From NCBI GenBank assembly GCA_025594325.1, contig JANHCV010000002.1:1984001-2048000 (forward strand): a stretch of DNA of 64,000 bases. Reading direction: 5' to 3'. This document shows, piece after piece, positions 3,038 to 11,772 of the stretch (its first letter is position 1; each line of letters starts with the position of its first letter). The DNA comes from Blastocladiella emersonii ATCC 22665 (lineage: Eukaryota > Fungi > Blastocladiomycota). A program made the translations under genes and the position numbers. The notes under the pieces were generated by a model. The model ran no database searches and was not told where the DNA came from. It saw nothing but the letters and a program-made list of their open reading frames with translations.

Positions 3038-4294
3038 CACAGCAGCAAACCGCGCATTTCTTAGAGCGAGAACACAGGCAAAAGCAGGCACTTTTTGAAC
3101 AGGAAGAAGTTCTTATTTTTCTTAGCCCTTGGCAACGCCGCCATCCGGTGCCGCGAGCGGGCGATTCCGCCGCCAGCTCGCGCGCGCGCGAGATTAGGTC
3201 AGTCATGAGGATCCGAAACATGATGATCGCGGATCGATCGCGCGCACCGGGTCGCGCTTCCGCTGCTGCACCACTTGCGCGGGTAGGGTCCCTCCTCGAG
3301 CAGGGCCACCTGCCCGCACGCGCGCGCACCCCGCCCACCCCGCCGCCCGCGACCCGCACAGCCAGCGGCAGCGACCCGCACACGCAACGGCGGCGGCTGC
3401 CCCAAAGATGGCGCGCCTTGCGCGAGCGGGCCGCTCGCGCGGTTGTTGAGGACGACGGCGGCGATGATCGCGACCTGGACCAGGACGTGTTGGTGCGGAC
3501 GGCGTGCTAGAGGAAGATGGGCGAGGAGAGCGGTGAGTCGGCGATCCAAAGAGCGAGCTTGCGCAAGTAGATGGGGACGTATGTCAAGGATCACAAGCGG
3601 GTCAAGCGAGCTGGGACAGACAAGCGACGTGTCGCGGCGCGGCAGCCATCTACACGCAGAGGAGAACGCGATCCGTTAGCCGGTGGTCGTGGCGAGCGAG
3701 CGGTCAGCGGCGGGGCAGCGTACTGTGAAGAACGCCTGGCGTGAGCGCGCACGGTTGCAAGGGAGTCCTGCGGCGACGTCTACATGGTTGGTGGTCAGCA
3801 CACATGGCCGCCGTTTGGGACTCCATGAGGGCATGTACCACTCGAGCATCGTGGTGGGCGAGGGCGAGGTGAAGAGCGCGAGATGGGTGAGGGCTGCAGT
3901 CGGCTTTTATGTCCGTGGCCAGCGACCGAGGCAGGCAGCGGGGCGCGGTGGGGCGCGGCGACCACCGCGGCCGTGCGCACGGATTTCGCAAAGGACCGGC
4001 GAAGGACCCTGGGCAAGCGGGCCGTGTTGCGTCATCGTGACGTGAAGGAGCAGGGCGCCCGAAGTCGCGCGCGCGTTCGCGCTCAAGCTGCCGCCGCGCC
4101 AGCCCGCGGGCGTTTCAGGCCGCGCCGCCTCGCGCAATTCACGCGCGAGGCCGCCGCTGCGCACGCTAGGCACCTCAAAGGATATGGGCGGCCTTTCTCC
4201 GCCGCACGCGCCGCGGCGGCAGCGCTTCGCCCAGGCAGCTCCCCCTCAGTTTTCTTAAGATTCTTAGCTAAGGAAAGGGCCATCTGCTGCTGTG
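3038..4294. mobile_element. Non-autonomous CACTA/CMC-like DNA transposon (1257 bp)
   Basis: Terminal inverted repeats CACAGCAGCA (3038-3047) and TGCTGCTGTG (4285-4294). 3-bp TSD ATC at 3035-3037 and 4295-4297. Subterminal TTCTTAG motifs at 3058, 3119 and 4261. Excision restores the host reading frame. No transposase recognised inside. Confidence 0.8.
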
Positions 4295-5306
4295 ATCGCC
4301 AAGTGAGAGAAGTCCGGGATCGTCAGTGGAGCGCCAAACTCGATGGCAAGCGTGCGGACGAGGTCGGGCGAGCCGCGATCGATTGCGCATAGCAGATACG
4401 AGCAAAAGTTTTCCGAGAGGTAGTGCTCTGCGGTTCTTTGGAAGTTCCTGCACTTGTGTCCAAAAGCGATGCCGCACGCGTGGAATGCCGGAACGAGCAG
4501 CCATACGAGGTCTGGGCGGTCCAAGTCAACGGCGTAGTCGAGGGCTGCTGTCGAGTACTTGGGATTGTTAGGGTCCATTGGGATTTGAAACAGTTCGAGT
4601 ACTCGGCGGACAAGCTTGTAGTTTCCACGCCGAACAGTGACAACAAGAGAGTCGGGGCACGAATTGAACCATGCCAGGTGCAAGTGAGGGATGAAGGCAC
4701 TTGCAGCGGATGCAACAGCCTGCTTGGTGAAGAGCCAGTCAAGAACGTCGAGCGCGCCATGATGAACAGCGAGAGCGACAAGAACGCTTGCAGCGTCGCC
4801 GTGAAGCGCAGAGTCTTCGGGAAGAAGCTTCACGCCCAGCTTGTTGATAAGGAAGCGGAGGACATCCAAGGACCGCGACTTGATAGCCAAGTGAGCGAGC
4901 GTACGGTGCAGTTGAGTCTGATACTTGAAAATTGTGCTGTTGGCGAGCTTGGCGGCGCCGACGACTTTGCATTCGCCCACAAGTGCTCAAAGAATGCCAA
5001 CGTTAGCGTACATGGCGGCATGGTGCATGGCGTTGGTGAGCCGCAATCCCGGAGCGCCCAAGACCCGAGCAAGGCGCAAAGGTGTGGCACCAACCTTGAG
5101 GAGAACTCGAGCCAACTCGATTTGGCCGGCGCAGACAGCGTGAAATAAGGCGAAATTCAAGTCAACAACATACTGTTGCCGTTGCCATTGCCGTGTTTTG
5201 GGCTTGGGGTTGGGCTTGGGAATAAGCTTGAGCATCTCGCGGAGCTTTGGGATGTTACCCAATGCAGCAAATCCACAGAGAGCTCCGTCGCGATCCATGA
5301 TCAAAA

Positions 5307-7502
5307 CTAGGTGTGTGTGCTGCGCACACACTTGGGTCTCAGCTGTAGCTTTACTTGGCTTCTTGAGACTGTTTCAGTTGGTGAAAGTGAAGTAGTTTAT
5401 CAATTCTCAATCCTGCTCAGCAGGGACAGTCGCTCCATGTCCTTCGCCACGTGCTGTAATGCCTTCTGCACAAGAACCCGACTGTTGAACCGGATGATGA
5501 GGATGTCCTCGGTCCTGCGCGCTTGAGCGCCGGACTTGCCCTTGACGGCCGACGTGCAGGTACGCTTGGTGGGCGAGGCCGGCGGGGTCTTGACTGTCTT
5601 GTTCTTGTCGCAGCCCTTGGCCTTGGTGGCCATCTTGCGCGCGCGGCTTGACAACGACAACGGGCCCGACTTGCACTCGCTCTCCTCCTTGTTGGCGTCA
5701 ACCTCCTCATCGGCCTCTGAGTCGACAACGATCTTGGTGATGTTCTTGTTCTTGGTCACGGCGGACAATGACGCGGGAACCACGGTCATGTTGGACTCGC
5801 TGCAGACGTTGTCCCACTCCTGCAGGTTGATGTTGAGCTCCTGGACAACGGCCAACGCCGCGGGTCCCAACGGCGTCGTGGCGCTGCCGGACGTGGTGCT
5901 GCCCAACGTGGTGCTGCCCAACGGCGCGTTGACGGACGCCAAGGTGGAAGTCGGCGAGCGGGTGGTGCACGCGGCCATGAGCGGGACAAGCGCAGCGGGC
6001 GCGGCCGCAGCGCTGGGAACCATCTTGGTGGGCGACAAGGGACCGGCCGTGAACATGGGCGGACTGTTGGGGCCCTGCAAAGGAGGCGGAGCTGTCGCAG
6101 TGGCGACCGACCGCATCTTGGTGATGAAGAAGGCGACAGACGAGGACATGGTGAAGTGGTCGTTGTTAGCTGCACCCTCAAAGCCGCAGAACAGCGGGCC
6201 AGAGACAAGCATGGTCTTGCCCGTCACCCACAGGCCCTTACTGCCATGCACACTGCACATCGATTTGTGAGTGAGAAGATTTGCAGAAGAGTCGAACAGC
6301 GGATCAGGACGTACCGGTTGGTCAGGATCACACAGCTCATGGACCACGTGGTTGCGTGGGGAGCAGGCTGGCCGCGGTGCGTTGGGTTGAGGAACTGCGA
6401 CGCGCCGTTCATGACAGTCATGGGCTGGGCCAGGTCAACCGAGGGTTGGCACATGGCGAACGTCTTGCCGCCGCCTAGAATCAGGAGACGTGTGTGAGCG
6501 CAGTTGGGGATCAAATGGAAGAGGAGGACCGAACCAAAGGTGAAGAGGCCGCTGATGATTGTGGGGTTGGGGTAGCGGATGGTGGGGTCGAGTTGACCAA
6601 GCAGGCTGGAAGCGATTGGGTAGAACACGAGCGTCTTGGGGGCGTCAAAGGTTGGAGCCATCATGGACGGGCACATGTCAATCTTGATGAAGCCGTTGGC
6701 CTTGTACAAGTTGCCAACGAGCAGGCTGCCGCGGTACGCGACAGCCGTGGCCTGCAGCAAGCCAAGCAGATCGGTCAAGGCGTTGGCGTTGATGAGGGGA
6801 ACACCAGGCGAGTAGCGGACGGGGATCTCGATGTTGAAGAAGAGGAAGGGGCTCGACGGCGGAGACGGAAACTCGGAGAGAACCGTGAAGCGCGACGAGC
6901 AGCGCAGCGAGAACGTGGGAGAGAAGTTCATGGTGTTGCGAGTGGTGGAGGAGAGCAAGGACTGTCAGCGGCGCCCCGCGCGCCTTTATATGCCGCCGCA
7001 TGACGGCCAGGCAGACGCCGAATCGCGAAGTATTATACGCTGCATGGAGTAGGAGTGGCGGGTAAAGAGCTGGTCAGCACAGGAGGTCTCAAAGAGCGTC
7101 GACGAGCAGCGGCAAGCGCGAGCGAGCGGGCGTGGAGTGGGAGAGCTTCCGAGGGCGCGAAAATGCAGCCAGGCAGGATTGATGTCAGGTCACGTGATGC
7201 TGAACAGTCAGTTTCGAGCGAGGTCCGTCTCGTCGCGCCTGCGCACGGGAACCGCTGCACAGGACCTCGCTCCCCTCGAAGTGAACAGCCTCGAACTGTT
7301 GGGGACTAGGCAAAGCACAGTCCAGATTTACGTTGGAGGGGTCGGAATGAAGTGAAAGCGAAAAACAACGGAACTCGTCGCGCGACGAAAATCGAAAACG
7401 GTCACTGAGCCACTCATGTGACCACAAGAGCAAGGTTGATGTGCCTGATAGGTTTCAATTGCTCCCACAGAAACTCAGCTTCGCTAAAGCTACAGCTGAG
7501 AA
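5307..7502 (-). mobile_element. Helitron2/Helentron-like non-autonomous element (~2.2 kb) with cargo gene
   Basis: Asymmetric 16-bp inverted repeat CTCAGCTGTAGCTTTA (5338-5353) / TAAAGCTACAGCTGAG (7485-7500). 3' hairpin GTGTGTGC-tgc-GCACACAC (5313-5331) followed on the - strand by CTAG (5307-5310). 5' mini-hairpin CTCAGCT..AGCTGAG (7474-7500). Inserted in a T-run (G^TTTTG); removal restores the F-V-L-I codons of copy A. Confidence 0.75.
5400..6931 (-). CDS. Unknown ~489-aa protein carried inside the Helitron2-like element (beta-rich N-terminus, low-complexity S/T/P/K tail)
   Basis: Exons 6931-6315 and 6252-5400, joined by a 62-nt GTACGT..CAG intron that links ORFs 6224..6958 and 5400..6347 in frame (TNR-VHGSKG). 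TATAAA on the - strand at 6985-6990. Confidence 0.7.
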
Positions 7503-8061
7503 CGAATAGCTCCTTGAGAGGGAACTCGTCCACAGCGTCGCGACCAGCACGCGAGAGTGCGCGTAGCGGCGCGCAGCCTTTGGCGCCAAGGTACCGCAGA
7601 CAGAGTGTGCGCCACACGGGGGTGACACGGACGAGGTCAATGAAGCAAGAAGTCGAGCGTGGCGCCAATTCGTCTCCAGCCCAACCGGGCTCCAGGTGAA
7701 GTCCATTTGAGTTCATGGCGGCAGTGGAGCTCAATGCGAGCAGTCTTCAAGTGCGAGGGTGGGCTTAGACGGCGATGGACAGAGACGTTCGCGAGGGAAA
7801 CGAACTCGGTGCCCTGCGCCCTGCGCCCTGCGCCCTGCGAGATCGCCATGGGAACCGCTTCAACGCGTCGCCCAAGCTATCACGTGAGTGGCGCAACGCG
7901 TCCCGCGTTGAAACGCTTCCGGGTGATGTGGCGCGCAGCACTGTACGCGGGGTCGCAAGTGACAGATGTGTAAAGGAGACTACGAAGGTACGCTGCCGTC
8001 TGACCTCATTGAGGAGCATGTAAAGCAAAGTCATGAGCGAATTGTCATTACAACAACCGAG

Positions 8062-11000
8062 TTACAAACCACCCAGGAACGCGCCCGACGCCCACGTCGT
8101 GGCGGCCTCACCAATCGCCGATGCCGTTCCCGAATCACCGTGAGCCGCCGTTGGGCCCCGGAACGCCGAATTGAAAAGCTCAGTCAACTCCAACACAGTG
8201 ATCGCGGCCCCGCGCGCAGTAGAGGGAGCTGCGACGGTCGGCGGCGTGGTGAAGGCGGAGTGGTTGGTGGGGGATGGGCGAGGAAGGTGTGCCACAGGCG
8301 CAGCAGCAGCGACCGCGGGGTCAGTAGGTGCTGCCGCCTCGAACGACACCTTGTTCATCAGCGCGGGACCGTGCACTAGCTTGTCAGGGCGACGAGAGGG
8401 GCGCAAAAGCGGCTTGCGGCGAAGGTCGCGTTCGCGTTCGAGCTCCGGGACCTTGATGGTCTGGGGCTCGGACACGACCGCCGTCGGTGCGGCGATCTCG
8501 ACGACGGTCTCGGTCACTGCCAAGCCGAGAATCGGCTGGGTGGGATCGTGGCGCGACCACAGCAGGTCCATGGACTGGCTCGACACGAGGTGGCACGGAA
8601 GCGCGTTCCACACGAGCGGCGCGCCGCGCACGTGTAGGGTAGTGATGATGATGTTGAGCGAGTCAAGGGTCAGGCACGGGTAGCGATCGAGCTCGCGCTG
8701 GAAGCGTGGTTGAAGGCTCTTGGGCGGGACGACGTTGAGAAACTGCGAGACATCACAAGAAGGTAAGTCGAAGCCGGAAGTAAGCATTGAGGGATCAGCA
8801 AGCAGGTTCGACGCTTGAGCATTCTTGACGCGCTGTAGCAGCGCCCAGCGCAGGTACATGGCAAGCTGCAGGGGCGTGATACGGCACTTGGGCAATGCAC
8901 TGTCTCCGCAAGCAGCACCGTGGGTACTGCTGGTCGCGGCCGTGACTGGGCTCGTGGGACGGCGTGAAGCGAGCATGGTAGGACACCAGCGGAGATCGTG
9001 CTCGCCAATGAACGGGCTCGCGCAATTCGCGAGAAGCAGTGCAACCATCTCCGGATCGCCATTGATAATCGCCTGCGCGAGCGGGGACCGCTGGACAAGC
9101 GACCGATGACGCAATGGTCCATTGAGCGTGTAGGTGGGGTTGGCGTCGAGGAGGTACTCGAGTCCAACGTTTGGAAGGGCGCCGTGTCCAAGCAGGAGAC
9201 GCACTGTCGCAATATCGCGGCGTGCGACAGCAATGAACAGCGGGTTGGCCAGCGACGCTAAGTCGGGGTCGGTCAGATCGACGTCGCCATAGCTTGCACG
9301 GCGCGAAAGGTGTCCGTTGGGCGAGCTGGAAGCAATTGTGGCGTCAAAGATCGGATGGTGGAGAGGCCGGTTTGACACAATCTACATGACCGCTTCGTCA
9401 GCACTGCCACCGATTGATCGCGGCGAAACAAACGAGCCCGCGAAACGTACCTGGTAAGAAACATCCATAGCGGTACCGCTGCGCTGGCTGACAGGTCGGT
9501 CGGCGTCCAAAGCACGCGCAACGTGCTGAAGCAGCACTTCGAGGCGGCCAGTATCGCGATCAATCGCTGCATTGATGAGAAGAGACGCCATGGTCTTGAA
9601 TGACACGAACAAGCCACGAGAAAGAAGATTGACGATGGCGGGATGCTTCTCCCCAACCACCCGCATGCCACAGTTGAGCGGGTACCGATCGTGGCTGTCG
9701 CGCAGATCGGAGCGCGCGCCCCTGGCCAGCATCTCGGTGAGCAGCGGGTCCCATCTGCCAGCAGTCTCGGCTCGGGAAAGCAAGATGTGTAGCGGCGACT
9801 GACCATGCAGCTGCAAATGCACGGCCGGACGGAGACTAGCCGTCGCGTTCCATGGAATCGAGACGTCAGAGCCATGGCGCGCCCGCAGCGCCTCGAGAAA
9901 AGTCGCAAAAAACGAGTCTCCTCGAGCGACCGCGCGACACAGTGCGTAGTAGACGCCGCCGCAAGACTCGTCGGCGGGCGAGGTGTTGTTCGAGATTGGG
10001 CAACTGGGGACCGGAGAATGGAGGAATCCGGGAATCGTCAGCGGAGCACCAAACTCGAGGGCAAGCGTGCAAACGAGCTCGATCGACCCATGGTCGATTG
10101 CGCATAGCAGGTACGAGGAAAACTTGGACGCAGAGTAATTTTTGGACCGACCGGAGCGCGTGCACTTGTGCCCGACGGCGAGGCCGCACGCCCGAAAAGC
10201 TGGTACGAGAAGGCGCACCAGGTCGACGCGGTCCGCATCAACAGCGTAGTCGAGTGCAACAGTTGCATAGTCTTGGTCGCCCAAACGCATTCGCGGGCTG
10301 AAGTGGTCGAGGACGCGACGGACCATGTCGTAGTTGCCGCTTCGAACTACAAGGGCAAGTATATTGGGACACCCGTCGAACCAATCTGCGCAGTAATAAC
10401 TCGGAATCACAGCAATTGCTACGGACGCGGCGTCGGAATGCTTCAACAGCGAGTCAAGAATGTTGGGCGCGTCGTGATTGATGGCGAAAGCAAGGAGGAC
10501 AGTTGCAAAGTCGCTGTAAGGAGTCGCATCCGCGGGGAGAAGCCGGGCGCCCGTCTCCTTGGCGAGGAAACGGACCACTGCAGAGGACCGCGAAGCGAGG
10601 GCCGATTGGATGAGCGAAAACCGCACTTGAGGTTTGGGCTCAAAGAAACTGAGGATTGGCACTTGAGGTTCCGCCTCAACAAAAATCGTATTTTCGGCAA
10701 GCTCGGCTACGCGGTCAACTCCGTGCGCACTTACGAGCATTCGGAGCATGTCCACGTTCCCGCGCGCAGCAGCAAGGTGCAGAGCATTGATTAGCCGCGA
10801 CCCATCGTTGCGAGAGAGCGGACCAGTTTGCACTGGTGTGGCACCTGCGTCGAGAAGAACGCGTGCCGCCTCGAGTTGATCGTAGCGAACGGCATAAATG
10901 AGGGCGGTGTCCAAGTCAAGAGAGTGGCCGTCCTGCGCGCTGCGCAGCTACACGAGGTCGAGCATTGAGCGAAGCTTGTGAATGTCGCCCGAGGCCGCGA

Positions 11001-11250
11001 AGCCGCAAAGGACTTCGTGTTGATCTTCCATTGAGACGTATAGCTCGCGGAGGGGAATCGAGTCCACGGCGTCGCGACCAGCACGCGAAAGTGCGCGCAG
11101 TGACGCGCACTCTTTGGCGCCGAGGTACCGCAGGCAGAGTGTGCGCCACACTGGGGACAAGTGGACGAGCTCGACAAGCGAAACGGCAGAAGCACGCGTC
11201 GATGCACCCGCGGTCTTGTCGGGTCTCGGGGATAGTTCATTTGAGTTCAT
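8062..11250 (-). pseudogene. F-box-like/ankyrin family copy B, full length with a single in-frame TAG
   Basis: ATG 11250 (MNSNEL..SLVELVHLSPVWRTLCLRYL). TAG at 10948-10950 is in frame with ORF 9382..10914. Intron 9382-9450 (GTACGT..TAG). Last exon 9381-8062. Ankyrin motifs TALIYAVRYDQLEAARVLLDAGA and NALHLAAARGNVDMLRMLV. Confidence 0.8.
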
Positions 11251-11772
11251 GGTGGCAGTGGAGGTCTAATGCGAGAAGTCTTTGAGTGCGAGGGGTAGTC
11301 TAGGGCGATAGTGAATGGAGGGCAAGACGGTAGCGTGCCGAGTGCAGCAGCGATCATGACCGGCGCTTTCACGGGCGACGTGGGAACTGCTGTGACGCGC
11401 CGCGCGAAACATCACGTGTGTGGCGCAACGCGTTGGATTTTTGGAGGACACGCGGACGAAGTAAATTTATATATACGCTCTCAGATAACATCGTATGGTC
11501 AAAATTTGAAGGGAAGGAGAGGGACAGTATGGCCTCGGGTCCTCGGTCGCAGTCACCACGTGTCAGGTCTGGAACCCGCCTTTCTTGACCGCCGTTTACT
11601 TTGCCCTCAATTCACCTTTCCGACTGTCCCCCCAGGCCGAGGCTTGTGCCCGGGCGGTGTCATCATGTGAGCGGCGCTGGGGGGAAAACCCGCACCGCAT
11701 TGCACAAGGAATCGGCTCACGTGGTGGCATTTCAGCCACACAGTGGGGGCGGTCGGAAAGGTCTATTGCCGT

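Follow-up and report, generated by a model that had tools for sequence, protein, structure and literature searches.

What is the 2196-bp block that interrupts an ankyrin-repeat gene of the fungus Blastocladiella emersonii ATCC 22665, and is the gene inside it still functional? The block lies on the minus strand at positions 5307-7502 of the stretch of DNA analysed here (the window; 64,000 nucleotides of contig JANHCV010000002.1). An earlier model reading, made from the letters alone (the sequence-only reading), had described it as a Helitron2/Helentron-like rolling-circle element carrying an intact, intron-containing gene within a dead host gene. Our analysis indicates that it is very probably a dead, internally deleted, non-autonomous copy of the Helitron2 type (HLE2, not Helentron), and that its orphan passenger gene, here called X, is worn and fused to a remnant of the transposase of the family.

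The ends of the element are defined by the following features, read 5' to 3' in element orientation.

5307-7502, minus strand: whole element, 2196 bp; the match to other copies stops precisely at both ends, and the paralogue-based empty site needs the removal of 2196 bp
7485-7501, minus strand: terminal 5' inverted-repeat arm (element positions 2-18, begins TC), identical across almost all copies
7474-7500, minus strand: 5' hairpin with a 7-bp stem (element positions 3-29)
5337-5353, minus strand: subterminal 3' inverted-repeat arm, the exact complement of element positions 2-18
5313-5331, minus strand: 3' hairpin with an 8-bp stem and a 3-nt loop (z = -2.1), placed after the right repeat and followed by ACCTAG
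5307-5310, minus strand: CTAG 3' terminus

The 5' end of the element reads T-TCTCAGCTGTAGCTTTA. Its two arms pair perfectly over 17 nt and at 91% over 22 nt, and since the 3' arm lies 30 nt inside the 3' end, the repeat is asymmetric. At the right end the 3' arm is followed by CCCAA, the hairpin and ACCTAG, which finishes at 5307. The flanks read ...ctattcgT upstream and TTTTgatc... downstream, placing the element in a T-run. The inverted repeat, both hairpins, the CTAG end and the T-run all lie where the sequence-only reading had put them, the repeat being 17 nt long instead of 16 bp.

The insertion site could be reconstructed from a paralogue of the interrupted gene at window positions ~10000-11300, which shows 76% DNA identity. 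Taking out exactly 2196 bp rejoins the host protein as ...DEFPLKELFV LIMDRDGA LCGFAA..., gap-free and colinear with ...DSIPLRELYV SMEDQHEV LCGFAA... in the paralogue. Because the host frame is restored by exactly this removal, the insertion produced no target duplication and the proposed boundaries are right; the clean splitting of the host gene, as previously described, is thereby borne out.

Searching the whole B. emersonii ATCC 22665 genome (32.65 Mb, 21 contigs) at the DNA level gave 90 matching segments. The dispersed copies with the same ends that the element type would predict were found: at least 24 two-ended copies of 357 to 5799 bp with differing flanks, plus several one-ended fragments. 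Across copies the matching stops at the same bases, and the ends occur at no fewer than 28 differently flanked places, including those of a second family described below. The base before TCTCAG and the base after CTAG were T at every examined end, whereas position -2 varied (17 A, 8 T, 3 G), and no target duplication accompanied the examined ends. A 2623-bp form consisting of the ends and X only was found at four independent loci with a single common deletion junction, and most shorter derivatives descend from it. The suggestion that the gene was mobilised as cargo is certainly right, as this amplified derivative shows.

The second family, with at least four copies of ~1.8 kb, has in common with the first just 71 bp at the left end and 47 bp at the right; its interior is unrelated and holds no long open reading frame. 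Such sharing of ends alone typifies non-autonomous Helitron families that depend on one transposase (PMC11417382). Its copies are located as follows.

C18:1205528 (L055): second-family copy
C4:1010675 (L056): second-family copy
C6:906282 (L059): second-family copy
C11:1829666-1837298 (L058): second-family copy with a nested Gypsy-type long terminal repeat retrotransposon encoding reverse transcriptase, RNase H and integrase

The last of these, a 7.6-kb element with the same ends, was considered as a complete master and rejected, as it consists of the second family plus the nested retrotransposon.

Two further loci of the first family show local rearrangements. The copies at C3:458998-461620 (L028) and C3:510836-513458 (L029) lie in opposite orientation with both flanks identical; judged by these flanks, they are parts of one large inverted segmental duplication rather than separate insertions. 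At C20:128408-128604 (L049 201-400) two element left ends stand 82 bp apart, each after a ...cctactcaat flank, a pattern that we read as a short local duplication including the insertion junction.

The sequence-only reading had advised looking for an element with the same inverted repeat and a rolling-circle transposase (RepHel, an HUH Rep joined to a PIF1-like helicase). Genome profile searches with Helitron_like_N and PIF1 located it at C2:727233-733031 (L032 1734-7532). This 5799-bp copy has the same two ends and is the one place where both domains occur in a single frame, of 1481 codons (Helitron_like_N, E 3e-23; PIF1, E 3e-19). HIH and YxxxY motifs are recognisable in the frame, its helicase matches PDB Pif1 helicases and, weakly, Helraiser, and the genome has no second copy of its Rep DNA. 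Pfam detected no endonuclease domain in it. The first 181 codons of the frame (L032 2272-6714; C2:727771-732213) are X exons 1-2, joined in frame to the Rep domain by a deletion. The GenBank model at C2:727771-732213 (H9P43_007709, P0001, 263 aa) combines pieces of X with pieces of Rep.

Other copies supply the remaining parts of the family's gene order. The 4077-bp copies on C17 and C19 contain X, the X 3' flank and then the helicase from the Walker A motif on, with one intron and a stop 94 nt from the element 3' end. The copies at C4:463k and C6:1052k run beyond the X 3' flank into a frame beginning MPPKQ..., of which 277 aa are retained (L043:1660-2490); this frame probably represents the true RepHel start, ~330 bp past the X stop. 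From these overlaps we infer a master of at least 7.9 kb, which would comprise the left end with its repeat and hairpin, ~500 bp including the TATA promoter, X, a ~330-bp spacer, RepHel and the right end. Its parts share one orientation, and its RepHel would have at least one intron and end 94 nt before the right end.

Two assignments can be refined with this Rep-bearing copy in hand. Of the original label 'Helitron2/Helentron-like', the Helitron2 part holds by the ends, the flanking Ts and the copy with Rep and PIF1, while the Helentron part does not, there being no endonuclease and the RepHel stop lying so close to the 3' end. The copy also bears on the reading of the block as a cut-and-paste transposon with terminal inverted repeats, or as an ordinary gene with a chance inverted repeat around it. 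A 17-bp inverted repeat is what either would offer, but here it is asymmetric with an internal right arm and comes without target-site duplication, and the Ts on either side are constant across 28 or more sites. Together with the Rep and PIF1-helicase copy with identical ends, and with no DDE transposase present, these observations effectively refute such an origin.

Comparison with the fuller copies shows how the window copy of this Helitron2-type family is built. Its gene comprises the following parts.

6985-6990, minus strand: TATAAA box 54 nt upstream of the X ATG, read from the sequence and kept in the C17 copy; putative promoter
6535-6931, minus strand: gene X exon 1, with the ATG at 6931-6929; exact match to GenBank model P0005
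6475-6534, minus strand: X intron 1, 60 nt, GT-AG, in frame and stop-free
6315-6474, minus strand: gene X exon 2 (GenBank model H9P43_002588)
6253-6314, minus strand: X intron 2, 62 nt, GTACGT...CAG
5526-6252, minus strand: X-derived part of exon 3, ending ...KGKSGA at the deletion junction 5526|5525
5400-5525, minus strand: last 41 codons and stop (5400-5402) of the RepHel helicase, in frame with X after the deletion; the helicase frames of C2, C17 and C19 end in this peptide too

Relative to the 4077-bp form, the window copy consists of positions 1-1975 and 3857-4077. The deletion junction 5526|5525 has a 2-nt microhomology and was found in no other copy. The deletion drops the last 41 codons of X, that is, the acidic stretch and the second basic repeat resembling a nuclear localisation signal (NLS), and ...KGKSGA (after X codon 444, in intron-1-retained numbering) is continued by the helicase tail ...RRTEDILIIRFNS...RIEN-stop. 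The open reading frame corresponds to GenBank model H9P43_002588 (P0005; 469 aa; exons 6931-6535, 6474-6315 and 6252-5400), which by this alignment is exactly an X/helicase chimera. The frame is open as first described; its earlier length of ~489 aa reflects retention of the 60-nt in-frame first intron. The element was also said to hold no Rep or helicase, which is not quite right: the segment from 5525 to the stop at 5400-5402 is the C-terminal tail of the helicase.

To assess the decay of the gene, nine X-bearing copies were aligned and differences counted against the majority sequence. With 86 differences over 1976 positions, the window copy is the most divergent one. C>T and G>A changes make up 64 of them, 57 of these at CpG sites; 50 differences are nonsynonymous and 24 synonymous. 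In the gene body, decay per copy-site amounts to 18.8% at TCG, 7.8% at CCG, 4.6% at ACG and 2.3% at GCG. Among the distinct coding CpG transitions, 85 of 155 alter an amino acid (0.548), compared with 0.549 expected from the available CpG sites. We conclude from this agreement that the copies, including changes inherited in propagating lineages, evolve neutrally, and that X in them is without purifying selection. The 485-codon frame is kept in five of the nine copies, intact ones lying at C1:845k, C3:459k, C11:1464k and C11:1472k, while three carry frameshifts and the window copy carries the fusion.

These results bear directly on whether H9P43_002588 might be a functional, expressed and domesticated cargo gene. 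Its frame is open over 469 codons, its splice sites are canonical, the TATA box is kept and GenBank annotates it. An open frame is nevertheless weak evidence of function, because CpG transitions seldom create stop codons. The copy is also the most diverged one, with 85% amino-acid identity in exons 1-2 and nonsynonymous differences outnumbering synonymous ones as counted above, and it lacks the acidic/basic C-terminal 41 residues of X, ending in helicase-derived residues in their place. Domestication is therefore very improbable in our judgement. The cargo can no longer be called intact, as the sequence-only reading had it: the end of X is gone, a helicase stump is attached, and the amino-acid changes have accumulated among neutrally evolving copies.

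CpG decay is unevenly distributed along the element. When element positions 1-570 and 600-2100 were compared in the window copy plus L024-L031, decay per copy-site was 0-5% in the 570 bp before the X ATG (window 6933-7502) versus 13-34% in the gene body (~5400-6900), with 12 decay events in the upstream part versus 67 expected (P about 1e-16). The contrast comes mostly from decays common to two or more copies, singleton TCG decays being equally frequent in both regions (6/29 versus 22/98). An unmethylated active promoter, considered as the cause of the drop upstream of the ATG, was demoted on account of these equal singleton frequencies; the contrast may stem from methylation that differs by region or from constraint acting on the 5' region in propagating lineages. 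The genome has at least four loci with a C5 cytosine-methyltransferase domain.

We then turn to the nature and origin of X itself. Searches used single exons or the GenBank models P0002 and P0005, exons being joined only for translation and substitution counts. The gene has two GT-AG introns and encodes 469 aa in the GenBank model, or 485 aa with intron 1 read through. The G+C contents of its majority sequence at the first, second and third codon positions (GC1/GC2/GC3) are 0.57/0.56/0.88, and this frame-specific composition is good evidence that X is a real protein-coding gene. For comparison, GC3 is 0.62-0.65 in RepHel, 0.86-0.90 in the core genes of the window and 0.62-0.72 in the local ankyrin and repeat gene families; only the core-gene-like value of X hints at a host origin. 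All genome matches to either X exon fall within element copies, so that X is not a fixed single-copy gene residing elsewhere without such termini, an outcome that would have spoken against mobilisation.

Relatives of X outside this genome were not detected. An exhaustive HMMER search of 1.84 billion protein cluster representatives returned seven proteins, all of them B. emersonii copies at least 87% identical, and word-based protein searches gave B. emersonii ATCC 22665 'hypothetical protein H9P43_...' entries only. No match was obtained in Pfam or among PDB sequences at E<=10, and the ESM Atlas yielded unnamed clusters at chance-level scores only, named clusters giving no match. The N-terminal ~240 residues of the protein are beta-rich; they are followed by a region rich in Ser, Thr, Pro and Ala, by an acidic run and by two basic 'PASPTKR' repeats, an arrangement that suggests a nuclear protein. 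The N-terminal region contains no internal repeat, and its two halves do not resemble each other. The idea that this region forms OB folds finds no sequence support in Pfam, in PDB sequences at E<=10 or in an internal repeat. AlphaFold2 models of X (GenBank model P0002) reached a pLDDT of 34 alone and of 28 with five paralogues, too poor for structural comparison, and the OB-fold proposal is thereby neither supported nor refuted.

Could X instead be a protein that the element itself needs for transposition, for instance a nuclear chaperone or single-stranded-DNA-binding protein, like the RPA-like and OTU genes of elements elsewhere? Its position upstream of RepHel in the same orientation is that of RPA and OTU genes in HLE2 (PMC11417382), it has its own promoter-like TATA box, and there is no parent gene in the host. 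The protein architecture, with its beta-rich N-terminal part, disordered Ser/Thr/Pro linker, acidic stretch and basic NLS-like repeats, would also fit. On the other side stand the lack of any RPA or OB match in Pfam at E<=10, of a PDB sequence match, of an internal repeat and of zinc-ribbon cysteines, a GC3 of 0.88 unlike that of the supposedly co-evolved RepHel, and lineage-inherited changes that are nonsynonymous at the chance rate. The second family and many short derivatives spread without X, but this says nothing about a factor that acts in trans. We regard an accessory role as unlikely, and hold the more specific form of this proposal, that X is a new kind of nuclear beta-rich Helitron accessory acting in trans on the single-stranded intermediate or on target chromatin, to be just as doubtful. 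X is best read, from its distribution and composition, as a passenger gene taken up or kept by the Helitron2-type family.

Taken together, the history of the window copy may be pictured as follows. RepHel, supplied in trans for copies of the window type, would nick the left end and unwind 5' to 3', as in known Helitrons (PMC5148889, PMC11417382); the right repeat and hairpin would serve as terminator, and the single strand would integrate at a T-rich site (PMC5148889, PMC11417382). The element presumably entered the T-run of the ankyrin-repeat gene in this way, without target duplication, as the family's single-strand rolling-circle integration would leave it. A deletion joined X in frame to the last 41 helicase codons, and since its insertion the copy has decayed chiefly by CpG-to-TpG/CpA transitions, with TCG preferred. 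The parts of this mechanism that are directly visible are the ends and target context, the absence of target duplication, the Rep-helicase copy with the same ends and the amplified deletion derivatives.

Several points weigh against this account of a Helitron2-type family with a captured passenger. The extent of the insert is uncertain by 1 nt. According to the empty site deduced from the paralogue, one of the Ts beside the element came in with it, which makes the insert either TT...CTAG or TC...CTAGT between T and T; a strict T|T model with both Ts derived from the host shifts the host frame by one. The assembly holds no complete master copy, and the gene order was pieced together from overlapping partial copies. 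The C2 copy, the sole Rep-bearing one, is without the N-terminal part of RepHel, its helicase frame is broken by a CGA>TGA stop, and its 5' end reads TT for TC, so that it does not establish an active partner. DUF6570, a marker domain of HLE2, was found neither in the C2 frame nor in the 277-aa start of RepHel, the region being incomplete in every copy, and a word-based homologue search with the Rep region gave no matches; HLE2 is an assignment by structure and not by phylogeny. No parent gene or fragment of X was found outside the element in the host genome; its 'capture' is deduced from codon use alone, and X could be an old element gene. The assembly contains no intact RepHel of this family, for which reason the family looks extinct; the window copy is inert.

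The interrupted host gene belongs to an ankyrin-repeat family according to Pfam, and its two parts flank the element.

7503-7734, minus strand: N-terminal segment of the host gene, upstream of the insertion, placed by comparison with the paralogue
4987-5306, minus strand: ankyrin part of the host gene, downstream of the insertion; at 4987-4989 the frame meets a stop codon, opposite Arg in the paralogue

The upstream part had been labelled an F-box segment, a label without support from Pfam, as a search of 7503-7734 gave no F-box match. By contrast, the description of the host gene as dead agrees with our data: to judge from the in-frame TGA at 4987-4989 and the transposon insertion, it is dead. 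The uninterrupted paralogue occupies window positions 9385-11300 on the minus strand (Ank_2 at E 1e-15); it too has an in-frame stop, soon after the spot matching the insertion site, and may be a pseudogene or intron-containing.

The literature searched contained no paper linking Helitrons with Blastocladiella or Blastocladiomycota. A well-defined Helitron2-type family is documented here for this early-diverging fungal lineage: its ends are fixed to the base and its target preference is described, one relic still carries Rep, deletion derivatives form a graded series, and a second family uses its ends. For genome annotation, at least 12 'hypothetical protein' models (H9P43_002588, _008188, _000290, _000066, _007709 and others) can be recognised as copies or chimeras of X. 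The understanding of how Helitrons work is unchanged by this clear but fairly ordinary case of the known HLE2 plan.

The structure rules of HLE2 include short inverted repeats (12-16 nt) of which the right one is subterminal and followed by a stem-loop (PMC11417382). Elements of this type often have a 5' hairpin as well, encode a two-Tyr HUH Rep fused to a PIF1-like SF1B helicase, and insert between T and T with no duplication of the target. FoHeli1 and FoHeli2 of Fusarium oxysporum, which belong to Helitron2/HLE2 (PMC5148889), are likewise built in this manner. Their start 'TCAG' resembles the 5' TC(TC)AG of the B. emersonii element, which also has a 5' hairpin; their target is TNAT|T, compared with a position next to T in an A/T-T context here, and both insert without target duplication. 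As in FoHeli1/2, RepHel has no endonuclease, and there are many non-autonomous deletion derivatives with only the ends in common. Unlike FoHeli1/2, the present family resides in a blastocladiomycete, has an extra gene upstream of RepHel and ends in CTAG, as do Helitron1 and proto-Helentron; the likeness rests on structure and not on a Rep clade. Helitron1 elements have a 5' TC, a 3' CTRR and a hairpin, no inverted repeats and an A|T insertion site. The window element shares the TC and CTAG, but its 17-nt inverted repeat and the T that precedes TC in all copies argue against Helitron1. Helentrons and DINE-1 have ends of the HLE2 type and similar T-rich targets; they differ by an apurinic-endonuclease domain, for which Pfam gave no match here.

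With respect to its extra gene, the family can be compared with two known cases. The RPA gene in HLE2 subgroup a sits upstream of RepHel, as X does (PMC11417382), although X has no detectable sequence similarity to the RPA-like or OB-fold genes of Helitrons. In the HELPO1 Helitrons of Pleurotus ostreatus, orphan, intron-containing 'cap' genes have been amplified (PMC4289320). These lie downstream of RepHel and are transcribed (PMC4289320), whereas X lies upstream of it and is known from sequence; after Pleurotus, X provides a second fungal case in which a Helitron has multiplied a complete orphan gene.

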